Of a DNA stretch of 34,095 nt, positions 3,287 to 34,095 are shown in pieces. Under the pieces are notes generated by a model. The model had not been told where the DNA came from. It did not search any database and saw only the letters and a list, made by a program, of their open reading frames with translations. The position numbers and the translations under genes were made by a program. Positions within the stretch are counted from its first letter, which is position 1; every line of letters begins with the position of its first letter. The stretch is taken from positions 1 through 34,095 of the forward strand of contig DF237737.1 in assembly GCA_000708835.1 (NCBI GenBank), written 5' to 3'. This stretch comes from Klebsormidium nitens. Its lineage: Eukaryota; Plantae; Klebsormidiophyceae.

Positions 3287-14949
<11,663 letters not shown>

Positions 14950-24200: not shown

Positions 24201-26768
24201 CCTTTACATTTAAAGTGTTCATAGTCTCTCCCAACGGCTTGAAACCTGATATGGATTTTTCATTACTCGCAGATGCTGTCGGTCGAGCCAGCCAGCACCG
24301 TGCCCGACCAGGAGCGTTGCGTCACTAGCGACAGCCGAGGCTGGCGCTGCCCCCGCCCGCACCTGCCCGGCTCGCAGAAATGCGACCGGCATGACACTAG
24401 CAACCAGCCCAGGTCAGTGACAAACCTGGTCCCATTTTACATTACATCCAAGTATCAATGTCCAAATTCCGAGAGCCTGGGGATTCGTTTGGCAGAATGC
24501 TGCCGAGGACAGAAACGTTTCTTTGGCAACGTACTGGAGAGAGTGATCTGGAGGTTCTAAAGTTCGATCCGAGAGTCAGTCGTGCCGTCTTTGCCGCTGG
24601 GAGATACTCGGCTTTTCTCTGCTTGATTCTCGCAACGAACTGCAGAGAATGATGTCAGGGTCCTGGAGTTGGATCCAAAAGTCAGGTGTGCCGTCTTCAT
24701 CTTGTTGAGGGGCTCCGTTTTTCTCTGCTTGAGTTTGCTTAAAACAAGGAGTTTAATCAAGCAGTGACCCACAGGCAAGATAGGTTGACTCTGAGCTCCT
24801 CCTTCGAAGTAGGCACAAGCGAGTTATCAATCAAGAAGTAGCACACCGCGCAGGGACTCAAGACACTCTTTTGACCATAATATGCAAGCACCGAGTCATC
24901 GAAGGAAGCACAATCGAACATACCCCTCCTCGAGACTCTCTTCCATCCTGCATAATGGCTTGTCTGACTCTTCCACCCATCTTCTCCATCTCAGAAGCTA
25001 CACCAAATCAGAGACGAGCTCGCGCCGCCCCGAGGAGGCCGCCACCGCCGACTCGTGCCCCCCCTTCGTCGACCCCCTGGAACCCTTCAAGCCGAAGAAG
25101 CACTTCGGCTTCCGCGGGCGCACCAGCTTCCGTCCCGAGCACATGCAGCACCTCGCGCTGCGTCCCCCGGGCGCGTCCCCCGACCCGAAACCAGAGGGGG
25201 ATCCCCCTCCGGAAGACCCACCTGGGGACCAACCGAGGGAGGGCTTTTTGGATCCCGAGGAGTTGCTGCAGCTTGCCAAGGCGCGGCAGCTGAAGCGCGC
25301 GCGGTCGGCGCGGCGGCACGGGCCGGAGGTGCCCGGTACGAACGGCCCGGGGGCCGATGCGGGTGGGTCTGGAGGTCCAGGAGTGTCCGGGGGATCCCCC
25401 GGAGAGGTAGCCGGAGAAACGAGAAACGGGGGTGGGGAGAGCGGATCCGAGGAGAGATTGAAGCGGGCGAAGCTGTCGCCTGGGGAGGATATGGCCGAGC
25501 TTTTGACGGGGGATCCAACGGGGGTTTTGCAAGACGGGCGACAACCGAACGGGCCAACCGGGCAGCTTGCGGGGGTTAAGGGGCTTGGGGTTAAGCAATC
25601 GGTGACCAATCCTCCGATTCCTGGAGGGTTTGTACAAATGGTTCAGTCGGCGGCCCAGACCGAGCCCCAGAGATCCTCCTTTGGCGAGTTTGGGGCCAGG
25701 GTTGACGTGGCAAGGCTTGACCCCGTTGGGGTTAACCCCTTCGCCGCTAACCCGGTTCTTACCAGCACAACCCCCCTCAGCAGTACCTCGGTTCCACCGT
25801 TGATAAGTCCAGGGCCCAGTCACTGGGCGGGTCGAGCGGTCGGTACAACTCCGCCGTTGACGGGGCCTTGGGAGGTGCCCGGACGTCCGGAACCAGCGGG
25901 CTTTTTGAACAACGGCGTCGCCCCGTTTGTTGACATAGGGGGGCCCCTACAGCCGCTGACTTACAGGCCGCAAAATGGGCTGACCTCAGCTCCCGAGCGG
26001 GGTGAGGTCAGCACGGCGAGCCAGGTTGGGATTAGTGGGGATGAGAGCACTGGCTTTCTGTATGGGCCTGTCGTTCTACACGAAGAGAAACAAGTGAACG
26101 GAATAAACGGAACGCAGAGCGGCCCGTACACAACGTACCTCGGGCCGGCCGTCGTGCCCTTGCCAGGCGGTGCGAACGAGCTCGCCGGCACGAACGTTGC
26201 CGCCTATTTCGATGAGCCGCACTCCCTGCTAAATAATGGTGCCCCTCTTCCTGTTGTGTCGGATCTTGCGATGAAGCTGGATCAACCGGGGAGAGAAGGA
26301 AATGGCGCCAAAACGAACGGGACGAACGGCGTGCACCGGGCGTCGTCGAAGCGGGAGAATAATAGCGGGATGGGGGTGACGCGGAGCCGGGCGATCGAGG
26401 ATGGGCTTCCCGTGGGCCGAACGTACACGTTACCGGTCGAGCTGAAGCTCCCGGTGGAGTTGCGGCAGCCGATGGAGCTGCAGCCGTTTGTTCAGCGGGG
26501 GAAGCGGCAGACGACCAAGAAGAAGAAGCGCATCCCGCCGCCGATCGACGGCATTGATGACTCGATGCGGTGCACAAAGACGGGGGGTTCCGGGTGGAGG
26601 TGCAACCAGAGGCGGTTGGAGGGGTATGCAAAGTGCGAGCGGCATATGGAGATTGTAGCAAAGAGATCAAGGGTCGAGGCGACCAAGCCCGCCGAGGATG
26701 CCCCAAAAGAAGGCCCTGAAATGCGGGGTCCCGAGAACGAGGTTGCGATGGTTGAGGAGGTTAAGTAG
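18248..26768 (+). CDS. Large low-complexity protein with two WRC zinc fingers and N-terminal CxxC pairs, about 1668 aa, 5 exons
   Basis: join(18248-19648,21466-22895,23463-23724,24273-24412,24995-26768). All junctions GT-AG and phase-compatible (total 5007 nt), linking the 473, 479, 134, 95 and 628 aa ORFs. The start codon is uncertain; upstream exons cannot be excluded. Confidence 0.75.
24318..24392 (+). other. WRC zinc finger 1
   Basis: CVTSDSRGWRCPRPHLPGSQKCDRH = C-x9-C-x10-C-x2-H with the WRC core. Confidence 0.85.
26571..26645 (+). other. WRC zinc finger 2
   Basis: CTKTGGSGWRCNQRRLEGYAKCERH = C-x9-C-x10-C-x2-H with the WRC core. Confidence 0.85.
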
Positions 26769-27703
26769 GATAGTGCTGATGGACAGCTTCGTTGACTGAA
26801 GCACAACAGTCTTCTTCAATGATTGCCGGCCTTGAGCGGACCTTTCAATGGTTGTCTCACTGATGGTGGTGTTTTTTGTGTAAAACGCAACATATGACAG
26901 GAACCGAGTCGGTTTTGTGATGAGCACCTTCCGTTCTCGACCCTCCTATATGGTCGTGTGTGGTTCTACCAGATTGAGGCATGCATGGAGTGTGATTTGA
27001 CATGTCAGTAAGCTGAGCCGATTCGTCCTCTCATGAGCCTCTTAAGTTAAGTAAGCCACTCCATGATGCGCACGGGCTCGGAGCCACTGAGGCGCGTTTG
27101 CTCATGCAACATGCATGATGGGCGTGGCGGCTCTTGCATGGTGACCCCCACATTGTATTGAAGAGATTGATTGGTAGCACCCATGTAGACAACGACAAGT
27201 TGCAGCGCTGCACGACTCGTGATTGAGCGGCCGCCCACGTTGCTTACAAGTCTATTTATATTTAGCAAGGGCTTAAATAGATTGACGAAACCATTTTGGC
27301 TTATTCATAAGCTTTCCAGCCAAGCGCTAAAGACGGCATGCATGAGGATAGACAAGCAGGGCGCCGCACGGCCAATAGACTGCAGAGAAATGTTCAAGTG
27401 CCTTTTTTGGGGGGCAAACTACTAGCCATCATCATCAGCATTGGTGTTATGCAATGATGTTGGTATCCTCGTCCTGTTGAAGGCTTCTCGAGTCTCGACT
27501 CTGCCTCGACGCTCATTGATCGCGACTCGCGAAGCCGGCGTGTGCCGTGGTTTGGTTGTATTAGCACCCTCTGGGATGTCGGGCTCCCCCGAGCCAAGCC
27601 ATCAAGCCAATTTGATCTGCCCAGGCCATGCAGTGCGAATAACCTAACAACCACACTGAGTGATGGTACGCTTGCGGCTTGCCGGTACACGGTGGGGTAC
27701 CTA

Positions 27704-27835
27704 AAAACCGAGGAATGCACTTGCAACCAATCAGAAGAGCAGCAGCGAAACTTAAATCACCGGCAGACCCTCCGATATAGAGGTTTGGGGGGTCACCGAC
27801 GGCCGGATCTCATCGTTCTGCGCCCGAATACACCG
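27704..27835 (+). repeat. 132-bp direct repeat, outer copy (putative split direct repeat B2)
   Basis: aaaaccgaggaatgcacttg...cgcccgaatacaccg; one mismatch to 28811-28942 (aaacttaaat vs aaactaaaat). Confidence 0.95.
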
Positions 27836-28029
27836 TACGGGGCGCAGGTGAGACGTCGTATACGGCCGCGGTTAAGTAGCACTGGTACCGGTTGCCGGTC
27901 AGCGCGGTCTGAGGGTCGCCGGTGTCGCCGCGGTCGTTGCGCGCGCGGTGGAGTCAAGGTTGTACGGCATATAAGGCGCGCATTAAATGCGAGCGGAGAC
28001 TGCGGGGACCACTTAACCACTGATTGGCA

Positions 28030-28144
28030 GTACTGGAGTGGTCAGTGGTCAGTGAACTGCAGTAGTGCAGTACTGCGCGGTCACTGGACTGCAGTAGTGC
28101 AGTACTGCGCGGTCAGTGGACTGCCGTCAGTGGACTGCCGTCAG
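28030..28144. repeat. CAGT/ACTG-based short tandem repeats in the element
   Basis: actgcagtagtgcagtactgcgcggtca at 28056-28083 and 28088-28115; gtcagtggactgcc x2 at 28112-28139; gtggtca x2 upstream. Confidence 0.85.
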
Positions 28145-28325
28145 AGCAATAGAGTAGTAAGCAGTGCTTATTAGTAAGAGGACATTCCTGGAGGTTGAGG
28201 CGGCGCTGCTTTTTGATGAGAAGAAGTGGTGGTGCATACAAGCCTTGGAGTGGGCGCTGTAGGAGGCCTCTCCATTGGCTTGATCTATTGATCCTGCGGC
28301 GTTAGGGGAGTGAAAATATTCTGTA

Positions 28326-30141
28326 ATGATGGCGGAGCCAGGGTTAGCGGTCGTGCCAGTGGGCGGGGTTGGGCAGGGGCAGGTTGGCTTGGCTGTGGAT
28401 GAAAAAGAGAGGTGAGTTTATGTGTTTCGCATGGTTTAAGGGTGGGTTGGGTGGGTCGAAAATTTTCAATTTTCTCGTCTCCTTGGAGCGCCCCTTCTGG
28501 CGCCTCCCCTTTTGCGCAATCAACTTGAACAAAGCGCAATTAGGACGACGCTTCTTCAAGGCGCCAACCCGCCAGTCTGACGCGGCCGGGCTTAAGGAGG
28601 TTCAGGGTTTTAATTAATTGCAGCGTGGCCGGCTAGGCGGCCGGGCCTATTGGCGGCGTGCGACTTGCAGTTCTACCGGTCTCTGCAGGCCCAGCGTGCC
28701 TGCAACTTATAGCAGCTTAGCATTCCCCGAGCCTAAATCCGGTAGAAGGCTACGTTCTCTCTGAGCCGCACAATCTCCCATCAAGCGGCCGGCGAACATT
28801 CCCCTGCCTGAAAACCGAGGAATGCACTTGCAACCAATCAGAAGAGCAGCAGCGAAACTAAAATCACCGGCAGACCCTCCGATATAGAGGTTTGGGGGGT
28901 CACCGACGGCCGGATCTCATCGTTCTGCGCCCGAATACACCGCCCCAAAAATGCCAATTGTCACCAGACAACAGTTATTGACAAATAAGTGGGCTTACTT
29001 GCTGCAGGCGGGAGTTCCAGGCGCGGTGTCAGGCTCACGTTCTCTCCGTGCGCGGGATCCATGGCGGGCGTGGTGGGGGCACGAGCTCAGTTTGGAGCGC
29101 GGCCGAAACAAATGCGTTGTACGCCAGGGCCTTGACGGAGTTCGGGGAGATGGCAGAACGGAAGGTTTCGGCAGCTGCGAATAGCTCGCGCAAGCGGACT
29201 GCAGAAGAATTCGCAGCGTTCCTTGGTCGGAACCCTTACGGGGTTAGCATTGAGACCGCTTCTCCTGCGGACGTCGGTGCTTTTATCGTCAGTGACTGGC
29301 TGCCCCGACACAGCGGGAATTGCAGGACGGTGCTGCCGTCTACTGGAAAGACGGTGGCTTCTGCTTCTGCTGTGAAAGGGGTCGTGAAGGACCTGTCAAA
29401 AACATACACGTTGTTGGGGTACGCCGCCGGGCACGAGAACCCGGCCAAGTCAGAAGTTGTTAAGTCTTATCGGGACGGCTACGAGCGTTGCCTGCACGAC
29501 GAGGATGTGAAGGTCCAGCGCGCCAAGGTTTTCACCGAGGTGAAGTTGGATGCGCTGCTTGCGCACATGGCCGACCGCGTGAAGCAGGAGACGGACGCTC
29601 TGGAGCTCTGTACGCTGCTGATGGACCAGGCGGCCGTGTTGTACCTGTGGGAATCGTTAGCTCGGGGCAAGGAGTGCGGTGCGCTGAGCGCGCGAGAAAT
29701 TGAAGGAGGAGCCGCTCCTGCAGCGTACCCTGGTTGGAGCAAAACTGTTCACAAGAACCCAGTGCGCGTAGTCCGTTGGCCCAGGCTGGGACGGGAGTTA
29801 GGCTCACCTTCGTCGAAGCTGCTGCACAACTGATTAAGGGTTTGGAGATCCTTGGCGACCCGAGTCCAGAGGACGGTTACCTGTTCAGGGCGCAAAATCG
29901 GCAACGAACCGGATTCTCGCCGGGTCCAATTTCGAGCGCCTGCCTGCGGAAGCGAATTCAACGACGACTGCAGCAGGCAGGGTTGTTTGAGGGGGAGACC
30001 CTGCATAGTTTCCGTAGGTCAGCAGTGCAGCATGCGGCAGTCAACCTGAACTATAACGTGAAGCAGTTGATGGAGTTAGGGCGTTGGAAAAGTTACTCTG
30101 CCTTCAAGGTCTATGTAGAAGAAATCTGGCATCGGCGCTAG
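28326..30141 (+). pseudogene. Tyrosine recombinase of the retroelement; predicted join(28326-28411,29008-30141) with a 1-nt frameshift near 29750
   Basis: Catalytic set R (LARGKE), K (SKT), HxxR (HSFRR), GRW and Y (FKVYV); N-terminal 'NPAKSEVVKSYRDGY'. SKTV and QEPSAR lie in frames offset by -1. Exon 1 ends AG|GTGAGT and joins in phase to the ttgctgcAG|G acceptor. Recombinase identity is strong; exon 1 is a prediction. Confidence 0.8.
28811..28942 (+). repeat. 132-bp direct repeat, inner copy (putative B1), inside the predicted recombinase intron
   Basis: 131/132 identical to 27704-27835. Confidence 0.95.
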
Positions 30142-30255
30142 AGAACAGTTACAATTGAATGTTAATTGTCAGATGTTACTCCGTGTTCTCACTATGCTAC
30201 CTGTGCGCTCATGTATCTGATGCACTGCCACATTACTCCGCAATTGCTTTGTCAA

Positions 30256-30753
30256 CTACCATGTTATCAGGAACGCCTGCAACTTATACAGCGCTGGATT
30301 GGCCGTCCCTTTGGGGACCCGATGACTAGGCGTGCATGTGTCCGTGCTGTGTGGCAGGATCACCGGTCCCCTCACTGATGCTCGCTTGTTGATGCCGCTC
30401 AGCGCCAGCCACCAGTTGGTTGCCGGCGCCTCTGGGACTATGACCACGCAGCTGGTTTCGAAGCGCTGGATTGCCGTCACGACTTCGCTAAGGAGTCTCA
30501 CTGGTGGAAAAATCCAGGCTATCTCTCCGGGTGCCAGCACGTCCCGCCAGTCGACCCGCAGCGCATCTGCTGCGATGCAGCCGGGAGTGATGTGCTGGCT
30601 GAAGAACCGATCGGACAGGTGCCACGTGTCCGACGCAAACAGGTCCAGCGCTGGCTCCACGCCGAATTCCCCCTTGATTCTGCGTACCTGCCCCGCACTC
30701 AACCCCCAGTCGGAGCTGTCCTGGAATTTGCTAAGGTCATCTTCTTCCTGCAT
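30256..30753 (-). CDS. DIRS-type DNA N6-adenine methyltransferase-like domain (C-terminus of pol, in frame after a premature TAG)
   Basis: LDLFAS, AWIFPP and VPEAPATNWW motifs as in DIRS MT domains; same frame as the RT ORF, separated by one stop (VVAQ*KPRLEMQEEDDLSK). Confidence 0.8.
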   Translation of the reverse strand: MQEEDDLSKFQDSSDWGLSAGQVRRIKGEFGVEPALDLFASDTWHLSDRFFSQHITPGCIAADALRVDWRDVLAPGEIAWIFPPVRLLSEVVTAIQRFETSCVVIVPEAPATNWWLALSGINKRASVRGPVILPHSTDTCTPSHRVPKGTANPALYKLQAFLITW

Positions 30754-30768
30754 CTCTAGGCGCGGCTT

Positions 30769-32508
30769 CTACTGGGCCACTACGTCGAAGTCCCCCCCCA
30801 CGCACAGCTCAAACAGCTGTCTGAGCGCGGCGTTGACGTCGGGGGCGCGGCTATTCATGGCGTTCACCGCCCTGACCGCCCCTTGGTTGTCTCCCTTCAG
30901 CAGCACCGCGGCTCCCCGCAGCACCTCCCCCGCTCGCTCGTGTGCTTCCGTCAGCACCCGCAGGAACGCCACCGTTTCCCTTGCCGTGCTGGACATTTTC
31001 CTCTCGTCCTCCGAGAGGGTCCCGACAACCGAGAGCTTCTCGCCCCCGGGGATCTGAATGGTGCCTCCAAAGCCGGTTTCCGACGCGTCCGAACCAGCCT
31101 CCGCCGTTATGCAGCGCGGGAACCAGCGCCTGCCGTTCCATTCCGGCAGCCGCTGCAAGAACAACTCCGTTGTCCGCTTCGCTGCCTGGGGCGTTGAGAA
31201 GACGTCATCCCACGTCAGCTTCCCTTGGATTGCTGCGAAGAACGGCCGGCTATAGAGGGACGCCGGCAGCACTGCCGGGCTGACGGAAATCACCTTCCCC
31301 GCCACCTTGGCCAGCTCCCGGGGCGTGACGTCAGCGCTCTCTGCCAAACCCCTTAGCGCCGCCCGCAGCTTCTCCATCTTTGCAGGGGCTACGGCGAAGC
31401 GCTGGGCTACCGTCTCGATGATAAACCCCAGCCAAGGCCCCTCTTGTTGCGGCCAGAGGTTGCACTTGGGGATGCTGAGGACCGCTCCGCACAGCGTCAG
31501 AAGCTTGATGATGAAGATCGTCGCCCACAGACAGCGGTAGAAGTCGATGTCCCCTGTGAGCCCGTCGTCGAGGTAGCTCGAGACGGGCACCGCTCGCAAT
31601 CGGATCTCCTTACTCAGCTCCTGGGTGAGGAGAGTGTAGAGGAAGCAAGCTGCCGACCACCCGAAGCACATCGCGTTGTAGTGCATGTAGACTTCTCCGA
31701 TCTTGATCCCGAAGTACTTGCGGTAGGCCGGGTTAATCAGGACGTGGTAGTACCCGGCCTTGAAGTCCCAGGTCGTGAAGAAGGAGGCCTGCGTCAGAAA
31801 CGTGAGGACCTCGCGCAGCGTCTCGTACTTGAAAGCGTGCTTCTTCGAAAACAGGTTGACGTAGCGGGCGTTTACCACCAGCCGCCCCTTGGGGAGGTTA
31901 ACCACTCCGAGTGGGTTGACCACCTTAGGCTTGCCGTCTCCCGGGCCGTACACGTGCAGGGTACCGTTTTGGACCATCTTGACTGCTTCCCCCACTGCGA
32001 ACGGGGCGTTGTCGTAAAAGGACTGGTGGTTCCGGAATTCGACCTGATGGGGAACTTGTCCGTGAAGCAAGTCGTCCACTTCGAGGGGTTTGACGGTGCG
32101 GGCGAGCATCGCCCTAACTTGCTCGCGTTTCTTGGGCTCCGCTTCTTCGGTGCCCACAAACTGAGGTTTTATTCCCGCAGCGAGCATCTTAAGGACCCGT
32201 TTCGAGGACTCCCGTTTGGAGTCTTTCAGCAACTCTTGCCAGGCCGGGAGGTGCCGCCCAAAGCTGCCGGCCACAAACTTCTCCGGGTCGGACGTGTGGT
32301 CTCCGACGTTCCTCACCCAGGTTTCCAACTCCCCTTTCATTTCGGCGGACATTTCTGATCCCCCCGCCGGGCCTGGTGCTGTGCGCAGGACTTCTCGCAC
32401 AGCTTTCCGAAGTTGCTCTAGATCTGGGATAGGGGCCTGCCTGACCTTTGATCCCGGCAAAGAAAGCGTGTGTGCAGGCGTCGAGCGCCACGGACACGCC
32501 TTCTGCAA
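30769..32508 (-). CDS. Reverse transcriptase plus RNase H (DIRS-type pol), truncated by TAG at 30769-30771
   Basis: RT motifs WDFKAGYYHV, CFGWS and YLDDGL; RNase H GSDASETGFGG, STARET and GDNQGAV. The true start may be the later ATG (MSAEMKGE). Confidence 0.93.
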   Translation of the reverse strand: MQKACPWRSTPAHTLSLPGSKVRQAPIPDLEQLRKAVREVLRTAPGPAGGSEMSAEMKGELETWVRNVGDHTSDPEKFVAGSFGRHLPAWQELLKDSKRESSKRVLKMLAAGIKPQFVGTEEAEPKKREQVRAMLARTVKPLEVDDLLHGQVPHQVEFRNHQSFYDNAPFAVGEAVKMVQNGTLHVYGPGDGKPKVVNPLGVVNLPKGRLVVNARYVNLFSKKHAFKYETLREVLTFLTQASFFTTWDFKAGYYHVLINPAYRKYFGIKIGEVYMHYNAMCFGWSAACFLYTLLTQELSKEIRLRAVPVSSYLDDGLTGDIDFYRCLWATIFIIKLLTLCGAVLSIPKCNLWPQQEGPWLGFIIETVAQRFAVAPAKMEKLRAALRGLAESADVTPRELAKVAGKVISVSPAVLPASLYSRPFFAAIQGKLTWDDVFSTPQAAKRTTELFLQRLPEWNGRRWFPRCITAEAGSDASETGFGGTIQIPGGEKLSVVGTLSEDERKMSSTARETVAFLRVLTEAHERAGEVLRGAAVLLKGDNQGAVRAVNAMNSRAPDVNAALRQLFELCVGGDFDVVAQ

Positions 32509-32938
32509 GCGGATCTGTGGCTGTGTCTGGCTGCAGCTCCTCGAGCTCTTTGTCGGGCCCGCTACCCGCCAGCTCCGTGGCGTTATGAGGCGCTTTGGGC
32601 AACCCGCTCGGGTTTTCTGCCTGCGTCACGTTTTGGTCACGCTCGAAGGCGTCTGGGGGCCCCTCAGATTTCTTTCCAGGGCTGTCGACTTTTGCTCCGC
32701 CCTGCTCGCTTTGGGGGAGCGTTTTGTTCTCGCCCTTCGGGGCCGCTCCGTTTCGAGCCGGCAGTTCGCCACTTCGTGGCGCGACCGCTTCTGCGTTTTC
32801 CTCCGAGCCACGTGGCGGGGTTTGCGCCGGGTCGGTGGCTGTGACGCCTTGCTCCGTGGCCCTGGTGAATTCATTGTGAAGTTCAGTTTGAATAGAGCCG
32901 CAGCGGCGGTCTCGGGGAGCCAGGAAAAAACGCACCAT
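32189..32938 (-). CDS. ORF1 (gag-position ORF) of the retroelement, 249 aa, no recognised domain
   Basis: Upstream of and overlapping pol in a different frame, as is usual for DIRS; low-complexity acidic/Pro-rich. Identity inferred from position only. Confidence 0.45.
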   Translation of the reverse strand: MVRFFLAPRDRRCGSIQTELHNEFTRATEQGVTATDPAQTPPRGSEENAEAVAPRSGELPARNGAAPKGENKTLPQSEQGGAKVDSPGKKSEGPPDAFERDQNVTQAENPSGLPKAPHNATELAGSGPDKELEELQPDTATDPLAEGVSVALDACTHAFFAGIKGQAGPYPRSRATSESCARSPAHSTRPGGGIRNVRRNERGVGNLGEERRRPHVRPGEVCGRQLWAAPPGLARVAERLQTGVLETGP

Positions 32939-32952
32939 TCGCCGGCCAGTTC

Positions 32953-32959
32953 TTATATA
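32953..32959 (-). promoter_or_regulatory. TATA-like box (TATATAA) upstream of ORF1/pol
   Basis: Plus strand ttatata reads TATATAA on the minus strand, about 15 nt upstream of the ORF1 ATG. Confidence 0.35.
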
Positions 32960-34095
32960 GGAATAAGCGGGTTCCGACTAACCCGATTCTGAATAAGGGG
33001 CCCCGTAGCCGCATGTGCAAGTCGCTTCGCTAATCCACGCGGGCGGAGAAGGATTCAGCCCGATGGGCTCGGAAAACCTGGTTCGGACTTAACCCAAATT
33101 TAAGTTGACGAATTTTTCTCAGAAAATTCTCCGCTGCCAGTCGTATACCTTCTGGCTTAACGAGGTGGACCGAATTTATGAACTCACAAATTTTGTGTTC
33201 CTCCTAACCTCGCGGTAATTTTCCTTAACCCACTCTAACCGCGCAGTTAACCCGGTTAACGGGCGGATTTACACCAAAGCAGGACGTTCCAACTTTGAAG
33301 GCCATACAGTGGTCAAAACCTCTTTTTCTGGTGGCCCGAAGAGAACCAGCTTCGGTTCATTAGCTATGCCCCGTCTTTTTTGTACAATTAGAACTTTACA
33401 GAAGTGCATTTGGACACCTGTAGCTCCAGATATGACCGAATACGTGTTGGCAGGCAATTTTTCCCGGCCGGAGAGCAGAACACGCCCGAGATGCAGATGC
33501 AATAATTTGATCAAAGCATTCGAATCCCATCTTTGAAAGTAAACTCAAAGCATACCTAATGACCTGCTTTCAAGATCGGCTTCGATCAAATCACTGAGAC
33601 CGATCTACAAACATTTTATCGGATTCAGGAACACAGTCGAAACAACTTCATCTTACAAGGAACTTGTTGGGATCAGACACTTTTCATCCCTTGAAGTCAG
33701 CCGCCGATGATCCATCATGTTTGTCCAGTTCGGAACTCTTAGTGTTACGTTTCTATTTCCAACTATTTCGCTGCTCTCCTATACTTCTCTTCTACTCCAA
33801 CGTGGCTTCGTGGGGCTTTCTCTGTCTTTCGCTCCCCGAATCTCTTACCTACGACTTGCCCGATTTCCTGGGGCCTGACGGTCGCGGTCCTCACGATCAT
33901 CTCTGTCCCGATCGTCGGCCCTTCTCTTGCCGCCCCAGCCGAATCCTCTGCCGGAGCCTCCAGATCCGCTCATGTTAAGCGGAGGGAGTTTCGTTAGTCG
34001 GAGCCGCTTCAGGTGTGACGATTCGAGTCTATGAACTCTTCATATCGAACTCGTCCCAGTATATTGTCCGCGCGCGTATGGCGTATCTGCTATCT

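Follow-up and report, generated by a model that had tools for sequence, protein, structure and literature searches.

A putative phase-2 intron enclosing an internal direct repeat in the inverted recombinase gene of a PAT/kangaroo-like retrotransposon of Klebsormidium nitens

Results

The window analysed here is an entire Klebsormidium nitens scaffold of 34,095 nt that contains two N-runs. It carries a decayed, PAT/kangaroo-like tyrosine-recombinase retrotransposon of the DIRS order. Both the reverse transcriptase (RT) and the tyrosine recombinase (YR) by which that order is recognised were found, the YR taking the place of a DDE integrase. The pol gene, with the RT and then a putative Dam-like methyltransferase (MT), is encoded by the minus strand and the recombinase by the plus strand, in agreement with an earlier note on this DNA, which had described the recombinase as antisense to the RT template. 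The two genes converge, the recombinase ending at 30141 and pol at 30259 with 115 nt between their stop codons, and past the YR the element closes with a repeat, 971 nt and a second repeat. We found no further copies or fragments of the element elsewhere in the window, and a search of 27000-34095 against Rfam returned no family.

The pol gene is a single minus-strand frame that runs from 32952 to 30259 and is interrupted by two stops, at 32626-32628 and 30769-30771. Its upstream piece (32629-32952), belonging to a pol or gag-like ORF, is basic and of low complexity, and had no match in Pfam. The piece bounded by the two in-frame stops (30772-32625) carries the reverse transcriptase, with an RVT_1 match at 31417-31824 on the minus strand that scores 30.7 bits, above the Pfam cut-off of 29.6. 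The C-terminal piece (30259-30768) has a weak match to the Dam methyltransferase family PF05869 at 30406-30684 (E 0.012; 15.7 bits, below the cut-off of 28.1).

The main coding part of the recombinase, translated from 29009-29830 on the plus strand, has 131 homologues, many of them with a precomputed PF00589 assignment, and its best match is the 303-aa K. nitens protein KFL_007880030 (P0001), to which it is 100% identical. The 412-aa paralogue P0002 aligns with 29006-29776 in one frame and with 29728-30138 in another, and by comparing the frames we placed a one-base frameshift at 29750-29751. Upstream of it, 29008-29749 encodes the N-terminal and core-binding part (P0002 residues 36-292, 78% identity); downstream, 29752-30141 encodes the C-terminal catalytic part in the shifted frame (P0002 residues 277-412, 82% identity) and ends with TAG at 30139-30141. 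The HSFRR motif and the C-terminal Tyr region of this part are conserved among the recombinase homologues, and its PF00589 match (E 0.0011) is below the cut-off. The frame that the proposed splice opens halts at 29831-29833, ahead of the catalytic HSFRR...Y region, and P0001 is truncated by the same frameshift. Because the recombinase is frameshifted and pol has in-frame stops, we regard this copy as dead, and nothing functional would be made from it, even though its candidate splice signals are preserved.

Beyond the recombinase lie two copies of a direct repeat, which in split-direct-repeat terms are B2 and B1. The outer copy (27700-27835) delimits the element against host DNA, no element-like similarity being found upstream of 27700; the inner copy occupies 28807-28942. 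The two are identical at 134 of 136 positions, and at 131 of 132 over the core that the earlier note had delimited. In an arrangement of the type A1...B1-A2-B2, only the B pair is seen here, which is half of the architecture. At the RT-proximal end, searches with short-seed repeats, blastn at word size 7 and a pattern allowing 3 mismatches revealed neither a second repeat pair nor a copy of the inter-repeat segment, and this copy of the element may be truncated at its 5′ end. The defects at 29750-29751, 30769-30771 and 32626-32628 coexist with the near-identity of the repeats, which could mean either that a defective master was mobilised in trans or that some of these defects are errors of the Newbler assembly.

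The rest of the scaffold holds several other features. A 628-aa ORF on the plus strand (24882-26768) contains a WRC domain (PF08879, E 9e-10), is a plant GRF-type host gene and ends about 930 nt before the outer repeat of the element. At 13794-14341 there is a tandem array with a unit of roughly 133 nt in 3-4 copies that share 67-93% identity. Duplicated exon-like segments with 79-87% identity (8376-8676 and 8478-9597) lie around the N-run at 8711-9445 and so flank an assembly gap; each begins after a pyrimidine tract and CAG, they read as an MCM-like peptide, and one of them contains an in-frame TAG.

The recombinase frame is closed on its upstream side by a TGA at 28979-28981, in a frame whose codon starts are congruent to 2 modulo 3, and there is no ATG in any frame between this TGA and 29008. 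The earlier note had read the frame as closed at this TGA and as lacking an ATG before the homologous region, and both readings agree with the sequence. It had further proposed that a short upstream exon with its own ATG is spliced to this frame, and we found each part of that proposal as described. The candidate exon 1 (28326-28411, plus strand) starts with ATGATGG at 28326-28332, comprises 86 nt, or 28 codons plus AG, encodes MMAEPGLAVVPVGGVGQGQVGLAVDEKE before those two bases and ends AG/GTGAGT, the slash marking the splice site, so that the intron would begin at 28412. If it is left unspliced, the frame reads AGG TGA, with the stop directly past the donor.

The candidate acceptor is CTTACTTGCTGCAG followed by G, with AG at 29006-29007 within CAG at 29005-29007. 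The putative GT-AG intron (28412-29007, plus strand) is accordingly 596 nt long and of phase 2; the exons join in phase, AG plus G giving Arg, and are followed by REFQARCQAHV. A branch-like TTGAC (28978-28982) stands 26 nt upstream of the acceptor AG, and thus donor, acceptor, compatible phase and a branch-like motif are all present. The polypyrimidine tract is modest, with 45% pyrimidine over the last 40 nt of the intron. A second AG at 28988-28989, 18 nt upstream of the acceptor, is also in phase with the donor at 28411; its use would add six codons (SGLTCC), and its pyrimidine context is poorer.

Within 27836-28978, no in-phase ATG exon other than 28326-28411 terminates at a GTRAG donor. 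We compared the arrangement with 5000 dinucleotide-preserving shuffles in a post hoc test, in which in-phase ATG exons that have 10 or more codons and end AG/GTRAGT occurred in only 0.8% of the shuffles, and those with GTRAGT alone as donor in 10%.

The inner repeat lies wholly within the putative intron, as the earlier note had also reported for its 132-bp core. Between the outer repeat and exon 1 lies the inter-repeat segment 27836-28325 (plus strand), which by its position is presumed to hold the recombinase promoter and leader. This segment includes a 32-nt tandem array at 28047-28132 (2.7 copies, 90% matches by TRF, consensus GGTCAGTGGACTGCAGTAGTGCAGTACTGCGC), about 200 nt upstream of the proposed start codon of the recombinase and between the repeats.

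A spliced model of the recombinase is already in the public annotation and hence is not new: the Augustus model KFL_007880030 makes the same join as the proposed splice, and its N-terminus is identical to the translation of exon 1. The nuclear genes of K. nitens are Augustus predictions on a Newbler assembly (PMC4052687), and because they were made in this way, P0001 and the models of its paralogues count as predictions and not as RNA evidence. Seven K. nitens models (P0001, P0002, P0003, P0009, P0015, P0024 and P0107) have a short first exon joined at the same split Arg codon, which means that each of these first exons must end in AG or CG. On the donor side, this split codon common to seven predicted models is the only support from other copies. 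Four of the seven first exons are visibly homologous, namely MEAALAELGRLAEEAEE, MESALTGWGPPAED, MEVALGGSGPEAATD and MDSALTECGRLAED, and have the pattern M-E/D-x-A-L...G...A-E-D/E in common. The first-exon peptides of the subfamily to which the window belongs (P0001, P0002 and P0003) are poorly alike. A tblastn search of the window with the first exons of the paralogues gave no significant match, these exons being too short and too diverged.

We then compared the region around the junction in 29 relatives that are annotated as plain, unspliced ORFs reaching the junction; they show about 40-80% identity to the window and are related to one another, so the counts are not independent. The first residue past the junction (+1) is Arg in all but one of the 29. 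The residue before it (-1) is Cys in 24 calls, the remaining ones having Tyr, Phe, Trp or Arg; at -2 there is mainly Leu, Phe, Met, Ala or Val, and upstream of residue -2 there is no conservation. The extension upstream of the junction is at most 7 residues long in 20 of the calls, and nine calls start with Val or Leu, which implies that GTG or TTG was taken as the start for want of an ATG.

Because Cys-Arg corresponds to TGC-AG/G, Tyr to TAY and Phe to TTY, the shared feature at the DNA level is T-N-Y-A-G/G, which is the consensus of a splice acceptor and not a protein motif. This signature fits a YAG/G acceptor conserved family-wide. Past the junction, the pattern R-x-x-F/W-Q...C...R-G is conserved across all subfamilies, and since this stretch is coding, a start codon is needed from upstream. 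In some relatives the frame does stay open upstream of the junction and includes a Met there (P0014, P0031, P0079, P0094, P0100 and two K. nitens models, P0005 and P0050); the position of the Met varies among them, and several of these sequences are truncated. The junction residue of P0014 is Lys in place of Arg, which would fit a damaged acceptor.

Many database entries of the family (within P0010-P0116) begin Met/Val/Leu-Cys-Arg. Such starts are probably a translated splice acceptor, and the annotated N-termini artefacts of ORF calling on eukaryotic DNA. A search with an alignment of 26 contiguous-ORF homologues found no related loci in collections of metagenome, viral and genome contigs.

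The stretch before the acceptor is also recognisable in other subfamilies. The read-through N-termini of P0060 and P0014 align by tblastn with the 3′ part of the inner repeat (28876-28950) and with its twin at 27769-27825, and the alignment also covers the 65 nt past the repeat, up to the acceptor. This conserved 3′ tail of the intron (28943-29007, plus strand) is the part that contains the TGA, the TTGAC and the acceptor. Compared with P0060 and P0014, the sequence of the window changes frame and is interrupted by stops in this stretch, which indicates that the stretch is conserved as DNA and not as protein. Conservation at the DNA level is what would be expected of cis-acting or splice-signal sequence in an intron, and the presence of the repeat within the intron thus appears to be a feature of the family. 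Paralogues differ by more than 20%, whereas the two repeat copies are 99% alike; this near-identity fits ends that are regenerated in a replication cycle that carries the intron along.

Discussion

We propose that the recombinase is made, family-wide, from a separate antisense mRNA that would start between the two repeat copies. In this mRNA, the short ATG exon would be spliced across the phase-2 intron to the main exon, and the intron would hold the inner repeat together with its junction with the inter-repeat segment. The splice signals belong to the strand opposite to the RT template RNA and are not splice sites on that template, so that the intron would go unread there and persist, being copied in each cycle. 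Antisense-intron retrotransposition reporters rest on the established principle that an intron that is unread on the template RNA survives, and by analogy an intron antisense to the RT template can survive retrotransposition in this element as well. We consider the whole account, from the antisense mRNA with its start between the repeats to the intron carried through successive cycles, to be probable.

Different parts of this account stand at different distances from the data. What the sequences compared show is the geometry, the consensus signals, an acceptor signature across the family, read from protein sequences, and the missing ATGs; splicing itself, a promoter between the repeats and the passage of the intron through retrotransposition are what we infer from them. 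The interpretation in the earlier note is supported in part, namely for the intron model, for the repeat inside the intron and for the opposed strands of RT and YR. Its further suggestions, that the intron shelters replication cis-sequences and that recombinase expression is tied to an intact end, are readings of the geometry, and we treat both as speculation.

The recombinase could instead have no intron, its continuous ORF starting a few codons before the junction, either with an ATG that intact copies possess or with a non-ATG codon, and the first exons of the gene models being artefacts of the gene finder. A Met start is indeed found 2-27 residues upstream in P0010, P0012, P0014, P0031, P0079, P0094 and P0100, an upstream ATG serves as the start, without splicing, in the K. 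nitens models P0005 and P0050, and every spliced model stems from one predictor. However, the Met positions are unconserved and the nine Val or Leu starts remain, and in the subfamily of the window the frame is closed by a stop 9 codons upstream and lacks an ATG. Conservation moreover ends exactly at the junction, save for a Cys that fits TGC-AG, an in-phase consensus donor is rare by chance, and the same split Arg codon with homologous first exons recurs in the seven models, so that we regard a gene without an intron as improbable. A real acceptor joined to an upstream exon other than 28326-28411, through another donor, another first exon, an additional non-coding exon or use of the AG at 28988-28989, seems to us somewhat less probable still. 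The family-wide support is on the acceptor side only, the first-exon peptides of P0001, P0002 and P0003 are poorly alike and the second AG is in phase, all of which would suit another exon; yet the 1.1 kb upstream offers no in-phase ATG exon with a GTRAG donor besides 28326-28411, and the split codon is Arg in 7/7 models.

The block 27700-28942 might also be a separate small terminal-repeat element that is nested here by chance, in which case the apparent intron would be accidental to one copy. One visible repeat pair and no RT-proximal pair are what such an insertion would leave, but sequence homologous to the repeat stands directly before the acceptor in other subfamilies (P0060 and P0014), and the outer repeat coincides with the end of the element-like sequence; a chance insertion is therefore very unlikely in our judgement.

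The spliced antisense gene with the repeat in its intron can be extended, tentatively, to a recombinase whose production depends on the repeat junction. The intron would then be more than a passenger. Split-direct-repeat elements carry the segment with the promoter and the start exon in duplicate, once at each end, and the gene would therefore span the internal repeat junction, the one that would also form when the ends join in the replication intermediate. The recombinase would be assembled across that junction and made only from DNA in which it is undamaged; at the other end, the second promoter and exon would direct transcription outward into host DNA, and splicing would strip the replication cis-sequences and leave the mRNA unfit as a template. 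We give this extension little weight.

Passage through spliced RNA should normally purge a retrotransposon of its introns. If the spliced antisense gene is real, the element would have an intron-dependent integration enzyme and so present, in nature, what the antisense-intron reporter does by design, with an intron that spans a repeat junction. A practical consequence concerns annotation: ORF-based annotation of transposons would miss the start of the recombinase, many database entries beginning at the splice acceptor. A paper on DNMT and retrotransposons in K. nitens (PMC5890265) was also considered as a source and set aside, as it deals with Gypsy elements and not with the recombinase family.

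An inverted recombinase as such has been described before, in kangaroo of Volvox carteri and in a "novel" PAT element of Daphnia pulex, according to PMC4157794 and PMC3266345, the latter of which cites Poulter & Goodwin 2005 for the inversion. Our literature search found no intron described in an inverted DIRS/PAT recombinase; the original accounts of kangaroo were outside that search, and a prior description is possible. Kangaroo (PAT group, Duncan et al. 2002, as described in PMC4157794 and PMC3266345) and the K. nitens element are both YR retrotransposons of the green lineage and have in common an RT, direct repeats and, if the weak Dam-like match is genuine, an MT-like domain; the split arrangement of the repeats is half visible in the K. 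nitens element. In both, a zinc-finger gag is not seen and the recombinase is inverted. They differ in the placement of the internal repeats, which in kangaroo are said to be between MT and YR (PMC4157794), whereas those of the K. nitens element lie beyond the YR, in the proposed intron, as the Daphnia element also has them beyond its YR; we found no repeat between MT and YR in 30142-30258, the internal repeat being instead at 28807-28942. The "novel" PAT element of Daphnia pulex (Szitenberg et al. 2014, PMC4157794, Fig. 1G) has the same order of parts as the K. nitens element. It is from an animal, its description mentions neither an intron nor a split first exon (PMC4157794), and the likeness is one of layout.

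If the account is correct, DIRS/PAT elements with a backwards recombinase would run a second, DNA-templated and host-like gene within a retroelement. Penelope-like elements also retain introns, but these are in the sense orientation and are kept by another route. A parallel in arrangement is HBZ of HTLV-1, an antisense retroelement gene; in its spliced form, the terminal repeat region supplies the first exon, which is joined to the body. HBZ is an accessory gene of a retrovirus and its repeat is an LTR, whereas the K. nitens gene encodes the integration enzyme, and there is no homology between the two. Antisense-intron indicator cassettes are artificial and the K. nitens intron is natural; the principle common to both would be an unread intron that is carried through reverse transcription.
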